Positions 16,986 through 21,754 of a DNA stretch of 64,000 nt are shown here, piece after piece. The stretch is taken from the sequence record NC_047880.1, one strand, 5' to 3'. The translations under genes were made by a program, and so were the position numbers. The notes under the pieces were generated by a model, which had not been told where the DNA came from, did no database searches, and worked only from the letters and a program-made list of their open reading frames with translations. Numbering within the stretch: position 1 is the stretch's first letter; each line of letters opens with the position of its first letter.

Positions 16986-18005
16986 ATGTCTAAAGAAACT
17001 TACTTAGAAGTACATGATGCCTATATTGCAAACAATTTCTTGCAGGATATTCCACGTTCTAAACTGACAGCTCGCTTCACTGAATATTTGAATCGTGTCA
17101 AAGGCGTTGTTCCTTCCAACGGTATTCCTATGGCTGAATTCTTGCAGTGGGCAAACATGATGCCAGCTAAGGACGAGGAGATCGATTCCCGTAGAATGCT
17201 GTTTACGGTTGGCATTGTCTACACGCATTTCATCTGGTCGTTCACTAAAGCCTCCTATGTTGTTGAGCGTGATATATGGAAGCATCTTGTCGAGAGCGAC
17301 TCTCCAAAAATACTACCGTCTGCTACACTCAAGCAACTCCCTCACTGGTCTCAGTGGATTGCAGCACCAGTTACTGTCACACACAAAGACAGCAAGTCCG
17401 ATACATCTTACATAATTGATTCGGATGGTTTCTGGGCGACCTATGCAAATTTCAACGAAACAACCCACATGAACCTGGCCTTTGTTGGGTCTATCAGCAT
17501 TAATAACGCCCGTCATATAATGCACATGCAACTTATCTTTGACATTACCAAAGATATGGAATTGATTGATGGTTTCGATTGGTTCATGTTTATATTGGGT
17601 GAAAACGGAAGTTCACATATAGACCCGAGTACACCAGAAGGTCCTGTCGTAGCTCGTATTCTTCAAGAATTTATGAAGCCTGTCGTCAACGTGCTTTTGT
17701 TCATTGCCTCAGAAGTAGACAACATCTACAAGGGAGGTATGAAAAGATTTAAACCCCGCAAACAGGGTAACTCATACAAAGTTATACCAGTGCGCGATGT
17801 AAGAGAGTGGAAAGTAGGTACAGAGTTACTTAATGAAATTCGTACATACGAAAACGAAGTAGAGACTGCGAAATCTCAAGGCCGTCGTGCTCATATACGA
17901 CGCGGCCATTATCATAACTACTGGTACGGTCCGCGTACTGGTGATCGTCAGCTCAAATCAAGATGGGTTCCACCTTGTGTTGTTAGAGGCACCATCGAAG
18001 ATTGA
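16986..18005 (+). CDS. hypothetical protein with C-terminal HxRRGH basic motif
   Basis: RRAHIRRGHYHNYWYG..RWVPP; start moved to ATG 16986 because the track start lies in a terminator. Confidence 0.7.
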   Translation: MSKETYLEVHDAYIANNFLQDIPRSKLTARFTEYLNRVKGVVPSNGIPMAEFLQWANMMPAKDEEIDSRRMLFTVGIVYTHFIWSFTKASYVVERDIWKHLVESDSPKILPSATLKQLPHWSQWIAAPVTVTHKDSKSDTSYIIDSDGFWATYANFNETTHMNLAFVGSISINNARHIMHMQLIFDITKDMELIDGFDWFMFILGENGSSHIDPSTPEGPVVARILQEFMKPVVNVLLFIASEVDNIYKGGMKRFKPRKQGNSYKVIPVRDVREWKVGTELLNEIRTYENEVETAKSQGRRAHIRRGHYHNYWYGPRTGDRQLKSRWVPPCVVRGTIED

Positions 18006-18886: not shown

Positions 18887-19147
18887 ATGTGCGGACGTAG
18901 CCTAGTACGGTTGAAGTATCTCGCACGGTCCTCGAACTGGTGCAACAATAAAGTAAACGCTTGTAATAAGCGGAAGGCGAAGCATGTACAGTGTGAAGAA
19001 TTTCTGGCAGCCACGAAAGGTTGTAGCACTGTCCAACTCTCGCCCAGTGTTATCTCGTTCTATTGTAATTCTGAACTGGTCGGTCAGACAGTATGGCATG
19101 AAATAGAAGGCGATAATTCACTTCAATTCCGTCTGTTACTCGCATAG
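18887..19147 (+). CDS. small hypothetical protein
   Basis: ATG 18887 after GGAG, followed by terminator. Confidence 0.45.
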   Translation: MCGRSLVRLKYLARSSNWCNNKVNACNKRKAKHVQCEEFLAATKGCSTVQLSPSVISFYCNSELVGQTVWHEIEGDNSLQFRLLLA

Positions 19148-19150
19148 TCT

Positions 19151-19190
19151 AAAGGGCTGTCAGAAATCAATCTGATGGCCCTTTCTCTTT
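19151..19190 (+). terminator. rho-independent terminator
   Basis: AAAGGGCTGTCAGA / TCTGATGGCCCTTT then CTCTTTT. Confidence 0.75.
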
Positions 19191-19255
19191 TATACGCTAA
19201 TTTTTAAACGTATAAACGCGCGGTGTTCCGCTACCTCACTCTAAGGATATTCATT

Positions 19256-20188
19256 ATGTCTTTGATTAAACTCGAAGGCGTTGCATCTACTTCTGCTGTA
19301 TCAAAAGCACAGAAAGATGCGGCTGTCTACATGTTCGGTTCTAAAGGTCACAGCATTGTTGCAGTGCTTGACAAGTTCGCTCGCGCAAAAGAAATTCAGG
19401 CGCCGCACCTTGCTGGTATTCTCGCGCTGATGAAAGATGGTGAAGATGACGAAATCATCAAATTCACATCGTCCGCTGCTGGGAAGAAGTCTATCGTTGC
19501 TGCGAAGCAATTCGCTATTGCAAAAACGTTTACGAACGCAATCAAATACCTGAAACTGATTCGCGTTCCGATGAAGTGGATTCCAGGCCACTCTGATACT
19601 GCGGCTGCACGTATTCAACAAACCGAAACTATTCGTGCAAGCAAACGCGCTTCTACAAAACCTGAGAAGCCTATCAAGCTTGATAACCCTCATGCACCTG
19701 AAGCCGTAGAGCAAGAACAAACCAAAGCGTCTGCCGCTATCAACAAGATTTGGGACCTGTCTAAGTTCAAATCAAATCTTCTTGATTCGTCTTGGTCTGC
19801 GTTGATCACTGCATTCAACACAGAGTTCAAAGGTCGCTATGTGTTGAAACTGAACAAGCGTGAAGGTGCATTCCGCATCAACACTCTCAATGGCGGTTAC
19901 TCTGGTCGTGGTGAAGCATTCCTGTCTGCTGCTTTCGAAAACAATTCGTGGGTAATGTTTGCCAACGACCCTGCGACTAAGAGTGCTGCATTCGATAGTT
20001 GGTACGTCGGTCCTAAACTGACATTCGCAACAATCGTTTCGTATCTGAGCAACGAACTTGCTGGTCCTCATTCCGGTGAGAAGCAAGAGATCGATAAGCT
20101 GATCGCTGGCGCTGTTATCTTCCCGCACAATGATCGCTATTACGATGCGACAGAAGACCAGCCGAAAAAGACTACTGCAAAAAAGTAG
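19256..20188 (+). CDS. hypothetical (possibly virion) protein, 310-aa short form
   Basis: ATG 19256 after AAGGA; ends GCA AAA AAG TAG. Confidence 0.75.
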   Translation: MSLIKLEGVASTSAVSKAQKDAAVYMFGSKGHSIVAVLDKFARAKEIQAPHLAGILALMKDGEDDEIIKFTSSAAGKKSIVAAKQFAIAKTFTNAIKYLKLIRVPMKWIPGHSDTAAARIQQTETIRASKRASTKPEKPIKLDNPHAPEAVEQEQTKASAAINKIWDLSKFKSNLLDSSWSALITAFNTEFKGRYVLKLNKREGAFRINTLNGGYSGRGEAFLSAAFENNSWVMFANDPATKSAAFDSWYVGPKLTFATIVSYLSNELAGPHSGEKQEIDKLIAGAVIFPHNDRYYDATEDQPKKTTAKK

Positions 20189-20244
20189 TTACCAGTGCAC
20201 CTGCTGCATACACTCCTTCTGGGAAAAGCGCAGATACACTGGTA
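20179..20244 (+). other. programmed -1 ribosomal frameshift cassette
   Basis: A AAA AAG at 20179-20185; stem TACCAGTG (20190-20197) / CACTGGTA (20237-20244) with inner CTGC/GCAG helix. Confidence 0.65.
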
Positions 20245-20889
20245 GACGAAATCGCAGAAACTCCTGCCAAGAAAATTGCAGCGAAAGGTCTTCGCGAGAA
20301 AGAAGAATACTTTGCTGCACTAGCTACGGTGCTAGGTCGTAACTTGCCTGCATATCGCGTAGAAGCAACGCACGAAGGTGTGACTGTTACACGTGGCTCG
20401 AAGGTCAACACTGTGCGTCTTGGCGAAAAAGCTTGGACCATTCAGATGGGCATCACTGCTAAATTGAAATCACTCGGCTCCAAGTTTGATATCGTTGATC
20501 TGCTTGGTATGATTGACAAAGGTATCGCCAGCCCAAAGCTTAAAGCCGGAGTTCCCGGCCAAGCAATGCCGATGCCTTACTTTGATGCCGTGAAGAAGAA
20601 CGCGCAAGACGGAACGTATGATACCGTTATCTACATGGAAGCTGATCGAATTTATCCTCTGGCGCTCAAGCGTGAAGGGAATATGTTCACAATGAAAGTT
20701 TCTATGTTCGGCCCTATTCAGCATTTCATCACTCAAGGTATTCAGGAGTGTGGTGCAACGCTGACTGGTGTGACGGGTAGATCATTCACGTTCAATGAAG
20801 ACGATGCCAACGCATTTGAGAAGTGGCTTAAAGCTCAACGTAGACCGAAGACGCTTTCGACCAAATATCTGATGCCACAGGCTTTGTAG
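20179..20889 (+). CDS. -1 frame extension of the 19256 gene (predicted 544-aa fusion)
   Basis: Frame open from 20134 to 20889 with protein-like sequence upstream of GTG 20329; no SD before 20329; A_AAA_AAG at junction. Confidence 0.65.
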   Translation, partial: KKVVTSAPAAYTPSGKSADTLVDEIAETPAKKIAAKGLREKEEYFAALATVLGRNLPAYRVEATHEGVTVTRGSKVNTVRLGEKAWTIQMGITAKLKSLGSKFDIVDLLGMIDKGIASPKLKAGVPGQAMPMPYFDAVKKNAQDGTYDTVIYMEADRIYPLALKREGNMFTMKVSMFGPIQHFITQGIQECGATLTGVTGRSFTFNEDDANAFEKWLKAQRRPKTLSTKYLMPQAL

Positions 20890-20906
20890 TAGCAACTGCT
20901 TGAACC

Positions 20907-20935
20907 AAAAAGGGGTGCCTTCGGGTGCCCCTTTT
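20907..20935 (+). terminator. rho-independent terminator closing the core block
   Basis: AAAAGGGGTGCC-TTCG-GGTGCCCCTTTT. Confidence 0.85.
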
Positions 20936-21010
20936 GCGTCTCTGTATGCCGTTAAAAGCACTAAAAATCGACCTCATATAGCTACATATAATAGACCGCA
21001 CATCTGCTGA

Positions 21011-21068
21011 ACTCTGCATATAATAGGCTAAAATAGCGCTAGATTTGAGGTGCTGAATATGATATACT
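21011..21068 (+). promoter_or_regulatory. sigma70-type early promoter with conserved upstream element
   Basis: ACTCTGCATATAATAGGCTAAAATAG, 26 nt, then TG-a-TATACT. Confidence 0.7.
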
Positions 21069-21115
21069 GAATGCGAGCAATAACGCTCAATACACTGATT
21101 GCCAAGGGGCATACA

Positions 21116-21754
21116 ATGACTACTTATACATCTATCTATGAAATCGCAGAAGCAATCGACGGCGGCCTGAATTCAGAAGAAGTTGCGCAAGCTCTTAACA
21201 TCACAGCGTCTGCACAAGAAATTCTGGTTTGTGGTCTGCAAGAAGACTTCGGTATCTACGTGCCGCTAATCAATGATCAAAACTATCTGATCGCTGACAC
21301 AGACGATTTGTTCTCTGAACATCTGAAAGGTCAAGGCGCTTTCACCGTATGCCGCATCTTCACACCAGAAAATGAAATGTTCGATCAAGAAGAAGTCGAA
21401 GTTGAACAGCTCGGCGAGTTTAATGATTTTGAAACTGCACTCGCAGCATTCGTATCTGCTATCAACACAGCCGCAAATCTGAAAGCAGAATTAGAAGCAT
21501 TTGCCGCACGTATCAATCAACTGCTGCCTGATGATCGCAGTGTTGTGGTTTTCGATGATATCGAAGATGAAGCCGCATACATGATGATCGTCAAAGTAGA
21601 GAACGGCAACGTGGTTGAAGATATCGGCTACAGTATTTCTCACTCGCTTTCAGGCACTGATTGTTCTTACGCTGACGCGGGCGACTACCCGACAATCGAG
21701 CTTGGCAAAACTGATGAAGAAGTTGCGGCCAACATCGCTGCTCTGACATTCTAA
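21116..21754 (+). CDS. acidic hypothetical protein
   Basis: ATG 21116 after AAGGGG. Confidence 0.7.
   Translation: MTTYTSIYEIAEAIDGGLNSEEVAQALNITASAQEILVCGLQEDFGIYVPLINDQNYLIADTDDLFSEHLKGQGAFTVCRIFTPENEMFDQEEVEVEQLGEFNDFETALAAFVSAINTAANLKAELEAFAARINQLLPDDRSVVVFDDIEDEAAYMMIVKVENGNVVEDIGYSISHSLSGTDCSYADAGDYPTIELGKTDEEVAANIAALTF

Follow-up and report, generated by a model that had tools for sequence, protein, structure and literature searches.

Are gp249 and gp250 of Erwinia phage vB_EamM_Y3 two genes, or one gene whose halves lie in different reading frames? Y3 (NC_047880/KY984068), a 'hairy' jumbo myovirus with a genome of 261 kb, belongs to the genus Sasquatchvirus, and both its GenBank and its RefSeq record list gp249 and gp250 as two separate hypothetical proteins. 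A gp249/gp250-type split is annotated likewise in pEp_SNUABM_52, a Korean isolate that is 99.7% identical to Y3. The window analysed here is a stretch of 64,000 nucleotides (nt) of NC_047880.1, in which every position equals the record position minus 186000. We consider it likely that gp249 and 'gp250' together form one gene with a utilised -1 ribosomal frameshift and products of 310 and 544 amino acids (aa), and we judge gp250 as annotated to be an artefact of the split gene. This proposal concerns the following elements of the window:

19256..20188, + strand: gp249, the 0-frame open reading frame (ORF) of 310 aa, starting at ATG 19256 and ending ...TTAKK-TAG
20179..20185, + strand: slippery heptamer A_AAA_AAG in the X_XXY_YYZ register, identical in L002, L012/L013 and L017
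20186..20188, + strand: 0-frame TAG stop adjoining the heptamer, kept in all four sources of the junction
20185..20889, + strand: -1-frame coding region of 234 codons and a stop, with domains C1 and C2, homologous to the in-frame C-terminus of relatives
20185..20328, + strand: the start-less stretch, 48 codons of the -1 frame without an ATG, GTG or TTG, for the first helices of C1
20189..20245, + strand: compound stem-loop, a candidate frameshift stimulator, 4 nt 3' of the heptamer, with an outer stem of 8-9 bp
20329..20889, + strand: gp250 as in GenBank, 186 aa from a GTG start, with no Shine-Dalgarno (SD) sequence upstream

Reading frames, relatives and carriers of the junction

The final codons of gp249 are GCA (20177-79), AAA (20180-82), AAG (20183-85) and TAG (20186-88), in frame with ATG 19256. 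From 20134 to 20889 the -1 frame stays open, and its translation includes KKVVTSAPAAYTPSGKSADTLVDEIAE. The first ATG, GTG or TTG in this frame is GTG 20329, and no AGGAGG-like SD sequence was found before either that codon or ATG 20445. On this reading of the codons, the segment 20185-20328 is translatable solely by ribosomes coming from gp249, and the length of a shifted product would be 310 + 234 = 544 aa. The heptamer A_AAA_AAG is by itself not rare, as the window has 13 of them where 16.3 would be expected; what stands above chance is the combination of its register, the abutting stop, a 234-codon -1 frame homologous to the relatives' C-terminus, and the hairpin. An earlier note on this DNA had pointed to the heptamer abutting the stop in GCA AAA AAG TAG and to the open -1 frame whose first GTG has no SD sequence, and direct reading bears out both. 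The compound stem-loop that it saw 4 nt downstream is indeed the predicted minimum free energy (MFE) structure, an internal SD stimulator, of which it saw no sign, is likewise not to be found upstream of the heptamer, and the annotation as two hypothetical proteins that it anticipated is what the records of Y3 and pEp_SNUABM_52 contain.

We examined 16 distant relatives, namely Logan contig L014 and 15 phage records from Alexandravirus, Snuvirus and unclassified phages (SNUABM_17, 2910A, Alexandra, AD1, SNUABM_35, _30, _7, _3, _16, _22, phB78, SNUABM_2, _1, _21 and _34). In all 16 the N-domain and C1 lie in a single ORF, which starts MSL(I/V)K... and runs from the N-domain through a K/P/A-rich linker and zero to three variable middle modules to C1, with the sequence '(Y)TPSGKS..TLVDELAE...'. 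The same domain, with the motif YTPSGKS...TLVDE..., is encoded by Y3 in the -1 frame right after the heptamer, and C2, the last domain of Y3, is also present in SNUABM_35 and L014. Because the distant relatives are in frame without exception, we read the Y3 ORFs as the halves of one gene, separated by a lineage-specific 1-nt shift. By comparison with these relatives, the Y3 arrangement is a derived 1-nt shift inside the linker, and the simplest event to produce it is the loss of one base from GCA AAA AA(A/G) GTA. The earlier note had proposed a programmed -1 shift and had counted in-frame fusions without the heptamer among relatives as evidence against one. The distant relatives are literally such fusions, yet they do not refute the shift, since their in-frame arrangement makes the shift a derived state of the Y3 lineage. 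The proposal itself finds support in the one-gene relatives, in the shared junction, in the selection acting on the -1 frame and in the kept hairpin. This support does not extend to the note's comparison with virion proteins (T7 gp10A/B) or to its fixed ratio of the two forms.

The junction GCAAAAAAGTAGTTACCAGTG is identical in four independent sources, which excludes a sequencing error: Y3, pEp_SNUABM_52, a Logan phage represented by two assemblies of SRR29211246/7 (L012 and L013), and a JGI contig (L017) that ends at window position 20200. The carriers of GCAAAAAAGTAG come from Switzerland (Y3), Korea (pEp_SNUABM_52), Logan SRR29211246/7 and JGI metagenome 3300029799. A protein scan and an exact-pattern scan of metagenome contigs found no further carriers, and a search of IMG/VR returned Y3 itself and SNUABM_22 only. 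The junction has also persisted next to a segment that has been exchanged:

19766..20170, + strand: hypervariable or mosaic middle-module cassette of gp249, bounded by the blastn matches between Y3 and the Logan phage (18304-19765 and 20171-20903)

The flanks of this cassette in the Logan phage are about 98% identical to Y3, and 19766-20170 is replaced by a different block of 838 nt, twice the length of that in Y3. As a result, the upstream ORF of the Logan phage encodes 453 aa and contains two divergent middle modules, but its end is again TTAKK-TAG. Homology between the two phages restarts at 20171, and this right recombination boundary precedes the heptamer by 8 nt.

Selection on the shifted frame

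Over 20185-20886, Y3 and the Logan phage (L013) differ by 18 substitutions. In the -1 frame 16 of these are synonymous and 2 non-synonymous, corresponding to a synonymous divergence (dS) of 0.104, a non-synonymous divergence (dN) of 0.0037 and a ratio (omega) of 0.036 (binomial p = 8e-9 against 23.5% synonymous sites expected); the same 18 changes read in the other two frames give an omega of 1.5 and 4.2. All five changes in the start-less stretch 20185-20328 are synonymous (p = 1e-3), or six of six if the single pEp_SNUABM_52 change is added (p = 3e-4), and the remainder, 20329-20886, has 11 synonymous and 2 non-synonymous changes. The dS of the C-part matches that of the N-terminal domain (0.10 vs 0.08), which gives both halves one shared history. 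The omega of the N-terminal domain is relatively high, at 0.29 (9 synonymous and 9 non-synonymous changes). Judging by these substitutions, strong purifying selection acts on the whole -1 frame and also on its start-less part. In the AlphaFold2 (AF2) model of an intact relative, P0002 (predicted local distance difference test score, pLDDT, 66, with C1 and C2 at about 80-90), three helices of C1 precede the position equivalent to GTG 20329, so that gp250 as annotated would be a truncated domain. The selection on the start-less codons together with the position of these helices argues that ribosomes leaving gp249 read the -1 frame, beginning at the junction.

These observations bear directly on gene fission, an explanation that we regard as unlikely, in which the halves have become separate genes, the C-part initiates at GTG 20329 or ATG 20445 and a frameshift product is of no importance. 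Fission would agree with the two GenBank records, both of which annotate two genes, and it explains the purifying selection on 20329-20886 equally well. It fits poorly with the lack of an SD sequence before 20329 or 20445 and with the 48 start-less codons, which have five to six synonymous and no non-synonymous changes and encode the first three helices of C1, contiguous in every relative. Neither a promoter nor a terminator was found between gp249 and gp250, and hairpins resembling terminators are instead located on either side of the pair:

19151..19184, + strand: terminator-like hairpin and T-run, a 14-bp stem followed by CTCTTTTATA, which ends the upstream unit
20912..20935, + strand: GC-rich hairpin GGGGUGCC-UUCG-GGUGCCCC followed by TTTT, read from the sequence

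The first of these forms the left edge of a transcription unit that contains this gene alone, and the second is likely the terminator that ends the gp249/gp250 unit; the motif AAAAGGGGTG is also found 3' of the homologous gene in relatives. With terminator-like hairpins flanking the locus and nothing between the ORFs, the locus looks like one transcription unit.

A recent inactivating frameshift would likewise leave two ORFs, and in this case the C-half would be decaying as a pseudogene, with the slippery run and the hairpin present by coincidence. We think this quite improbable. The distant relatives are all in frame, the indel falls within a homopolymer, and one family member, the contig L016 described below, has plain frameshifts, all of which speak for decay; but the omega of 0.036 in the -1 frame, the 234 codons without a stop or an indel at a dS of 0.10, the persistence of the junction across three continents/sources and through a module swap, and the kept hairpin all speak against it. 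Since the arrangement has been retained by selection, we take it to be used and not a dead pseudogene.

The downstream hairpin and proposed slippage at the heptamer

In the compound stem-loop that follows the heptamer, the outer stem is formed by TACCAGTG (20190-20197) pairing with CACTGGTA (20237-20244), and it encloses an inner CUGC/GCAG and an apical UCCU/GGGA pairing. For 20186-20250, the MFE prediction gives this compound hairpin (-20.8 kcal/mol, z = -2.68; 4 of 200 shuffles were as stable), and its stability ranks in the top 1.3% among 6394 segments of 60 nt from the 64-kb sequence. Only 0.18% of the positions in the window are the start of a perfect 8-nt inverted repeat whose loop measures 3-60 nt, and the chance of one beginning 3-9 nt past a given site is about 1%. 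The hairpin is kept in both pEp_SNUABM_52 and the Logan phage, with -21.1 and -22.3 kcal/mol (z = -2.96 and -2.94), respectively. The three substitutions that fall within it (20199, 20208 and 20220) are all at unpaired third positions, for which p = 0.036 given that 7 of its 19 third-codon positions are unpaired, and the one at 20208 extends the inner stem.

We suggest that a 1-nt deletion in the Y3 lineage, in the lysine-codon A/G run of the inter-domain linker, would have put C1 and C2 in the -1 frame. Most ribosomes would then stop at TAG 20186 and release the 310-aa form, consisting of the N-domain and the middle module, and a minority would slip back one base and continue into a 544-aa form, ...TTAKK-VVTSAPAAYTPSGK..., which would match the full-length protein of the relatives. 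Both AAA and AAG are decoded by tRNA-Lys(UUU) in Erwinia as in E. coli, and the pairing of this tRNA with AAG is weak. When the P site holds AAA and the A site AAG, both tRNA-Lys could re-pair one base back, from AAA-AAG to AAA-AAA. Alternatively or additionally, after translocation the P-site tRNA-Lys on AAG would slip while the slow UAG occupies the A site, and either route would lead to ...TTAKK-VVTSAP.... The TAG at 20186-20188, which terminates the 310-aa form, may thus also contribute as a 'shifty stop' (the concept of Weiss et al. 1987, as cited in PMC5009743). The outer stem, which contains G/C pairs, would reach the mRNA entrance channel at about the moment of the slip, and the hairpin probably raises the slip frequency. 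Together with C_CCA_AAG and G_GGA_AAG, A_AAA_AAG is one of the most efficient -1 motifs in E. coli, where these three motifs give up to 54% shifting with a stimulator (Sharma et al. 2014, PMC4066793). We infer both the ribosomal nature of the event and the ratio of the products.

Other sequences resembling parts of this signal were considered and set aside. A G_AAA_AAG at 20164-20170, 15 nt before the main site, has its A_AAG tetramer in register and the -1 frame already open; it was rejected as a second shift site, being missing from L013 and L017. A 6-bp inverted repeat, ACTACT/AGTAGT (20171-20189), puts the heptamer into a 7-nt loop and was rejected as a functional element, being broken in the same two contigs. 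Because neither is conserved in L013 or L017, both are probably incidental. In-frame A_AAA_AAG heptamers are also present in the linker before C1 in Alexandra (L005 3508-3514) and SNUABM_30 (L008 2470-2476), with a -1 stop one codon on, such that the short form would be the counterpart of the 0-frame product of Y3. No shift is needed in these phages, and the 60 nt downstream of the heptamers are unstructured (z = +0.4 and +0.9). We rejected them as dnaX-like sites, given that they have no downstream structure, and consider them most likely incidental.

A comparable arrangement is found in Logan contig L015 (DRR494324; 3901-3949), the N-part of which is 55% identical to that of Y3. Its ORF ends ACG CCC CCA AAG CGG TAG. 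Here C_CCA_AAG is in register and the stop comes two codons later, while the -1 frame provides 245 codons, for a middle module and then C1, to the end of C1; a hairpin follows the site (-22.6 kcal/mol, z = -2.5). Judged from the sequence of this contig, L015 is a second, independent -1 split in the family. The contig L016 (Logan ERR13298114; 2790-2830 and 3233-3260) serves as a contrast case, showing non-programmed indels. It has two 1-nt deletions, GGG to GG and A5 to A4, with no slippery heptamer in register at either, which probably stem from an error of sequencing or assembly or from decay of this copy.

The same 544-aa protein could also arise by transcriptional slippage, in which RNA polymerase adds an A in the A6 run and some of the mRNAs encode the long form, and this we hold to have little chance of being correct. 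Productive transcriptional slippage in bacteria normally needs ~8-9 or more identical bases, and the run here is only A6. The product would be identical (...AKKVV...) and homopolymer A runs are a known substrate (PMC5009743), but slippage of this kind does not require a 3' RNA hairpin at the distance of a frameshift stimulator, and the site in L015 is C5A3G, a ribosomal heptamer with no slippage run. Finally, a sequencing or assembly error or a phase-variable tract, with a true genome of A7 or A5 or a population that flips, is very improbable, for although homopolymers are prone to error, A6G-TAG is identical in four independently generated sequences and no A7 allele occurs in any database searched.

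A number of points weigh against a utilised ribosomal frameshift. No 5' SD-like stimulator is present in 20155-20178 (AGACCAGCCGAAAAAGACTACTGC; no GGAGG, AGGA or GAGG), nor in L013, and without a working stimulator the shifting of such motifs in E. coli is only ~0.3% (PMC4066793). The spacer between the heptamer and the hairpin, at 4 nt, is slightly under the usual 5-8 nt (about 5-9 nt for signals of the dnaX/IS3 type), and the significance of the hairpin is moderate; its 5' arm moreover lies within the Y3-specific linker and the distant relatives lack the hairpin, so that it arose with or after the shift. Ordinary mutation is to be expected in a homopolymer such as the one that holds the indel, and it leaves a slippery run automatically. 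The carriers of the shift are only about 2.6% apart, the selection signal amounts to 18 (+4) substitutions, and the selection test presupposes that the shift is older than the divergence of the carriers. A search for further splits of the L015 type returned L015 alone, which is thus an unreplicated singleton. In the open literature, taken without the 2018 paper describing Y3, we found neither proteomic or ribosome-profiling data on these genes nor a mention of a frameshift, and the support for the shift comes from genomic sequence comparison.

Protein family, possible further shift sites and known systems

In the gp249 protein, a helical and conserved domain at the N-terminus (aa ~13-111) is followed by a disordered K/P-rich linker and a single variable middle module. 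The N-domain is conserved in 24 homologues, and the AF2 model of the Y3 N-part is poor outside this domain. Neither the two Y3 pieces nor the intact relatives had a significant match in Pfam, PHROGs or NCBIfam, and a sequence-profile search of the PDB gave 0 matches. A Foldseek search of the PDB with the P0002 model gave no significant fold (best E = 0.065, to L6-like and PUR-like alpha/beta repeats), and no similarity to capsid or virion proteins was found by sequence or by fold. The BFVD matches of the P0002 model are confined to its own uncharacterised family and paralogues, the latter including A0A2H4IB92 of Y3 (408 aa), A0A384ZYB0 of AD1 (325 aa), two Yoloswag proteins and two JA13 proteins (605 and 105 aa). 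The domain family appears to be specific to this 'hairy' jumbo phage clade. Comparison of the middle module with the C-part by BLASTP revealed no repeat relationship. From its predicted architecture, the 310-aa product of Y3 has complete domains and may be functional. We speculate that the helical N-domain, the disordered basic linkers, the swappable beta-rich modules and the hypervariable cassette together describe a modular binding or decoration protein.

The neighbours of gp249/gp250 in Y3 are small hypothetical genes. Rfam has no match across 19000-21200, and no tRNA genes were found in the 64-kb window. Two genes upstream in relatives there is a precomputed Pfam match to PF26125 (AcrVA2-like; L015 43-1107, L016 1-759), and the Y3 ORF at the equivalent position (16986-18005) has no Pfam match at E <= 0.01. 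In several relatives a gene for an exopolysaccharide (EPS) depolymerase or a tail-spike beta-helix protein is located immediately downstream, which is not so in Y3.

Within the C-part, a further heptamer is located between its two domains:

20532..20543, + strand: a second heptamer, C_CCA_AAG, where C1 meets C2; it is in register with the frame of the C-part, and the next -1 frame has a stop one codon on

This geometry is shared, with GCT TAA in Y3 and GCC TGA in Alexandra, SNUABM_35 and L014 (L005 3886, L007 2821 and L014 3498). To go by its sequence, the site at 20532 is a possible dnaX-like truncation site, which in Y3 would give a protein ending ...SPKA; relatives without C2 encode a ...PKA C-terminus directly, as CGT CCT AAA GCA TAA. 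A perfect second heptamer is present in four of the five lineages that continue past C1 and in none of the ten that stop there (hypergeometric p ~0.004, uncorrected for phylogeny). Downstream of the second site, SNUABM_35 and Alexandra have strong hairpins (z = -5.4 and -2.2), and those of Y3 (z = -0.75) and L014 (z = -0.49) are not significant. As a tentative and rather doubtful extension, we suggest that the family may use -1 shifts at inter-domain linkers as an evolvable isoform switch with at least three nested isoforms. An indel of one base would turn the default isoform into the frameshift product and vice versa; at the first site Y3 and L015 would be short by default and long by shifting, and at the C1/C2 boundary a shift on C_CCA_AAG would regenerate the '...PKA' C-terminus. 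The stoichiometry of the isoforms would be set by RNA signals and not by separate genes.

The closest parallel in the signal is E. coli dnaX (tau/gamma), which has the same A_AAA_AAG read by a single enterobacterial tRNA-Lys(UUU), a stem-loop a few nt downstream and two products with a common N-terminus. However, the proteins are unrelated, and the dnaX shift truncates the product, with a stop one codon into the -1 frame, whereas the Y3 shift extends it by 234 aa. In dnaX there is furthermore a 5' SD-like stimulator 10 nt upstream, of which none is visible in Y3, and the spacer is 6 nt as opposed to 4 nt. The truncating geometry of dnaX does occur at the second site of Y3 (20532) and in relatives. 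In its geometry the Y3 junction also resembles orfA-orfAB of the insertion sequence (IS) 3 family (IS911, IS3 and IS150), where A_AAA_AAG or C_CCA_AAG lies near the end of orfA with the 0-frame stop close by, and a 3' stem-loop or pseudoknot stimulates fusion to a -1 ORF without an efficient start of its own. Unlike these elements, the Y3 gene involves no transposase and no mobile element, and its shift is derived within an in-frame family, whereas that of the IS3 elements is ancestral and universal.

Among phage genes, gene 10A/10B of T7 and T3 similarly gains a minor C-terminal extension by a -1 shift near the 0-frame stop, but T7 uses G_GUU_UUC and a distant 3' element where Y3 has A_AAA_AAG and an adjacent hairpin, and the extension is about 50 aa in T7 as compared with 234 aa with two folded domains in Y3. 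The tail assembly chaperones G/GT (G_GGA_AAG in lambda) likewise combine a phage -1 shift, a heptamer of the X_XXA_AAG type and a short and a long form. They are situated between the tail tube and tape-measure genes, a position that is conserved, whereas the Y3 gene lies among small hypotheticals, lacks a PHROG match and is in frame in most relatives. We therefore rejected membership of the G/GT group, there being no PHROG, Pfam or NCBIfam match and no neighbours other than small hypotheticals. In corrective or compensatory frameshifting (Atkins et al. 2016, PMC5009743), as in herpesvirus thymidine kinase (TK) mutants with altered G-runs, slippage after a homopolymer indel restores a full-length product, much as we propose for Y3. 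In those cases, however, the unshifted product is useless and the state usually transient, whereas the state in Y3 is stable across diverged isolates and accompanied by a hairpin.

If confirmed, the frameshift would mean that gp249 and gp250 of Y3, pEp_SNUABM_52 and the related contigs should be re-annotated as one recoded gene, and tailed phages, here a jumbo phage, would gain a well-documented -1 frameshift other than those in their tail-chaperone and capsid genes. As the distant relatives are in frame and the closest ones keep the shift under purifying selection, the locus would represent a rare, datable birth of a utilised shift site, the components of which are visible as the homopolymer indel, the retained slippery run, the lineage-specific hairpin and the parallel event in L015. 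The modular family with its hypervariable cassette provides candidates for host-interaction or virion-decoration roles in the 'hairy' jumbo phages of Erwinia and Dickeya, which are under development for the biocontrol of fire blight.

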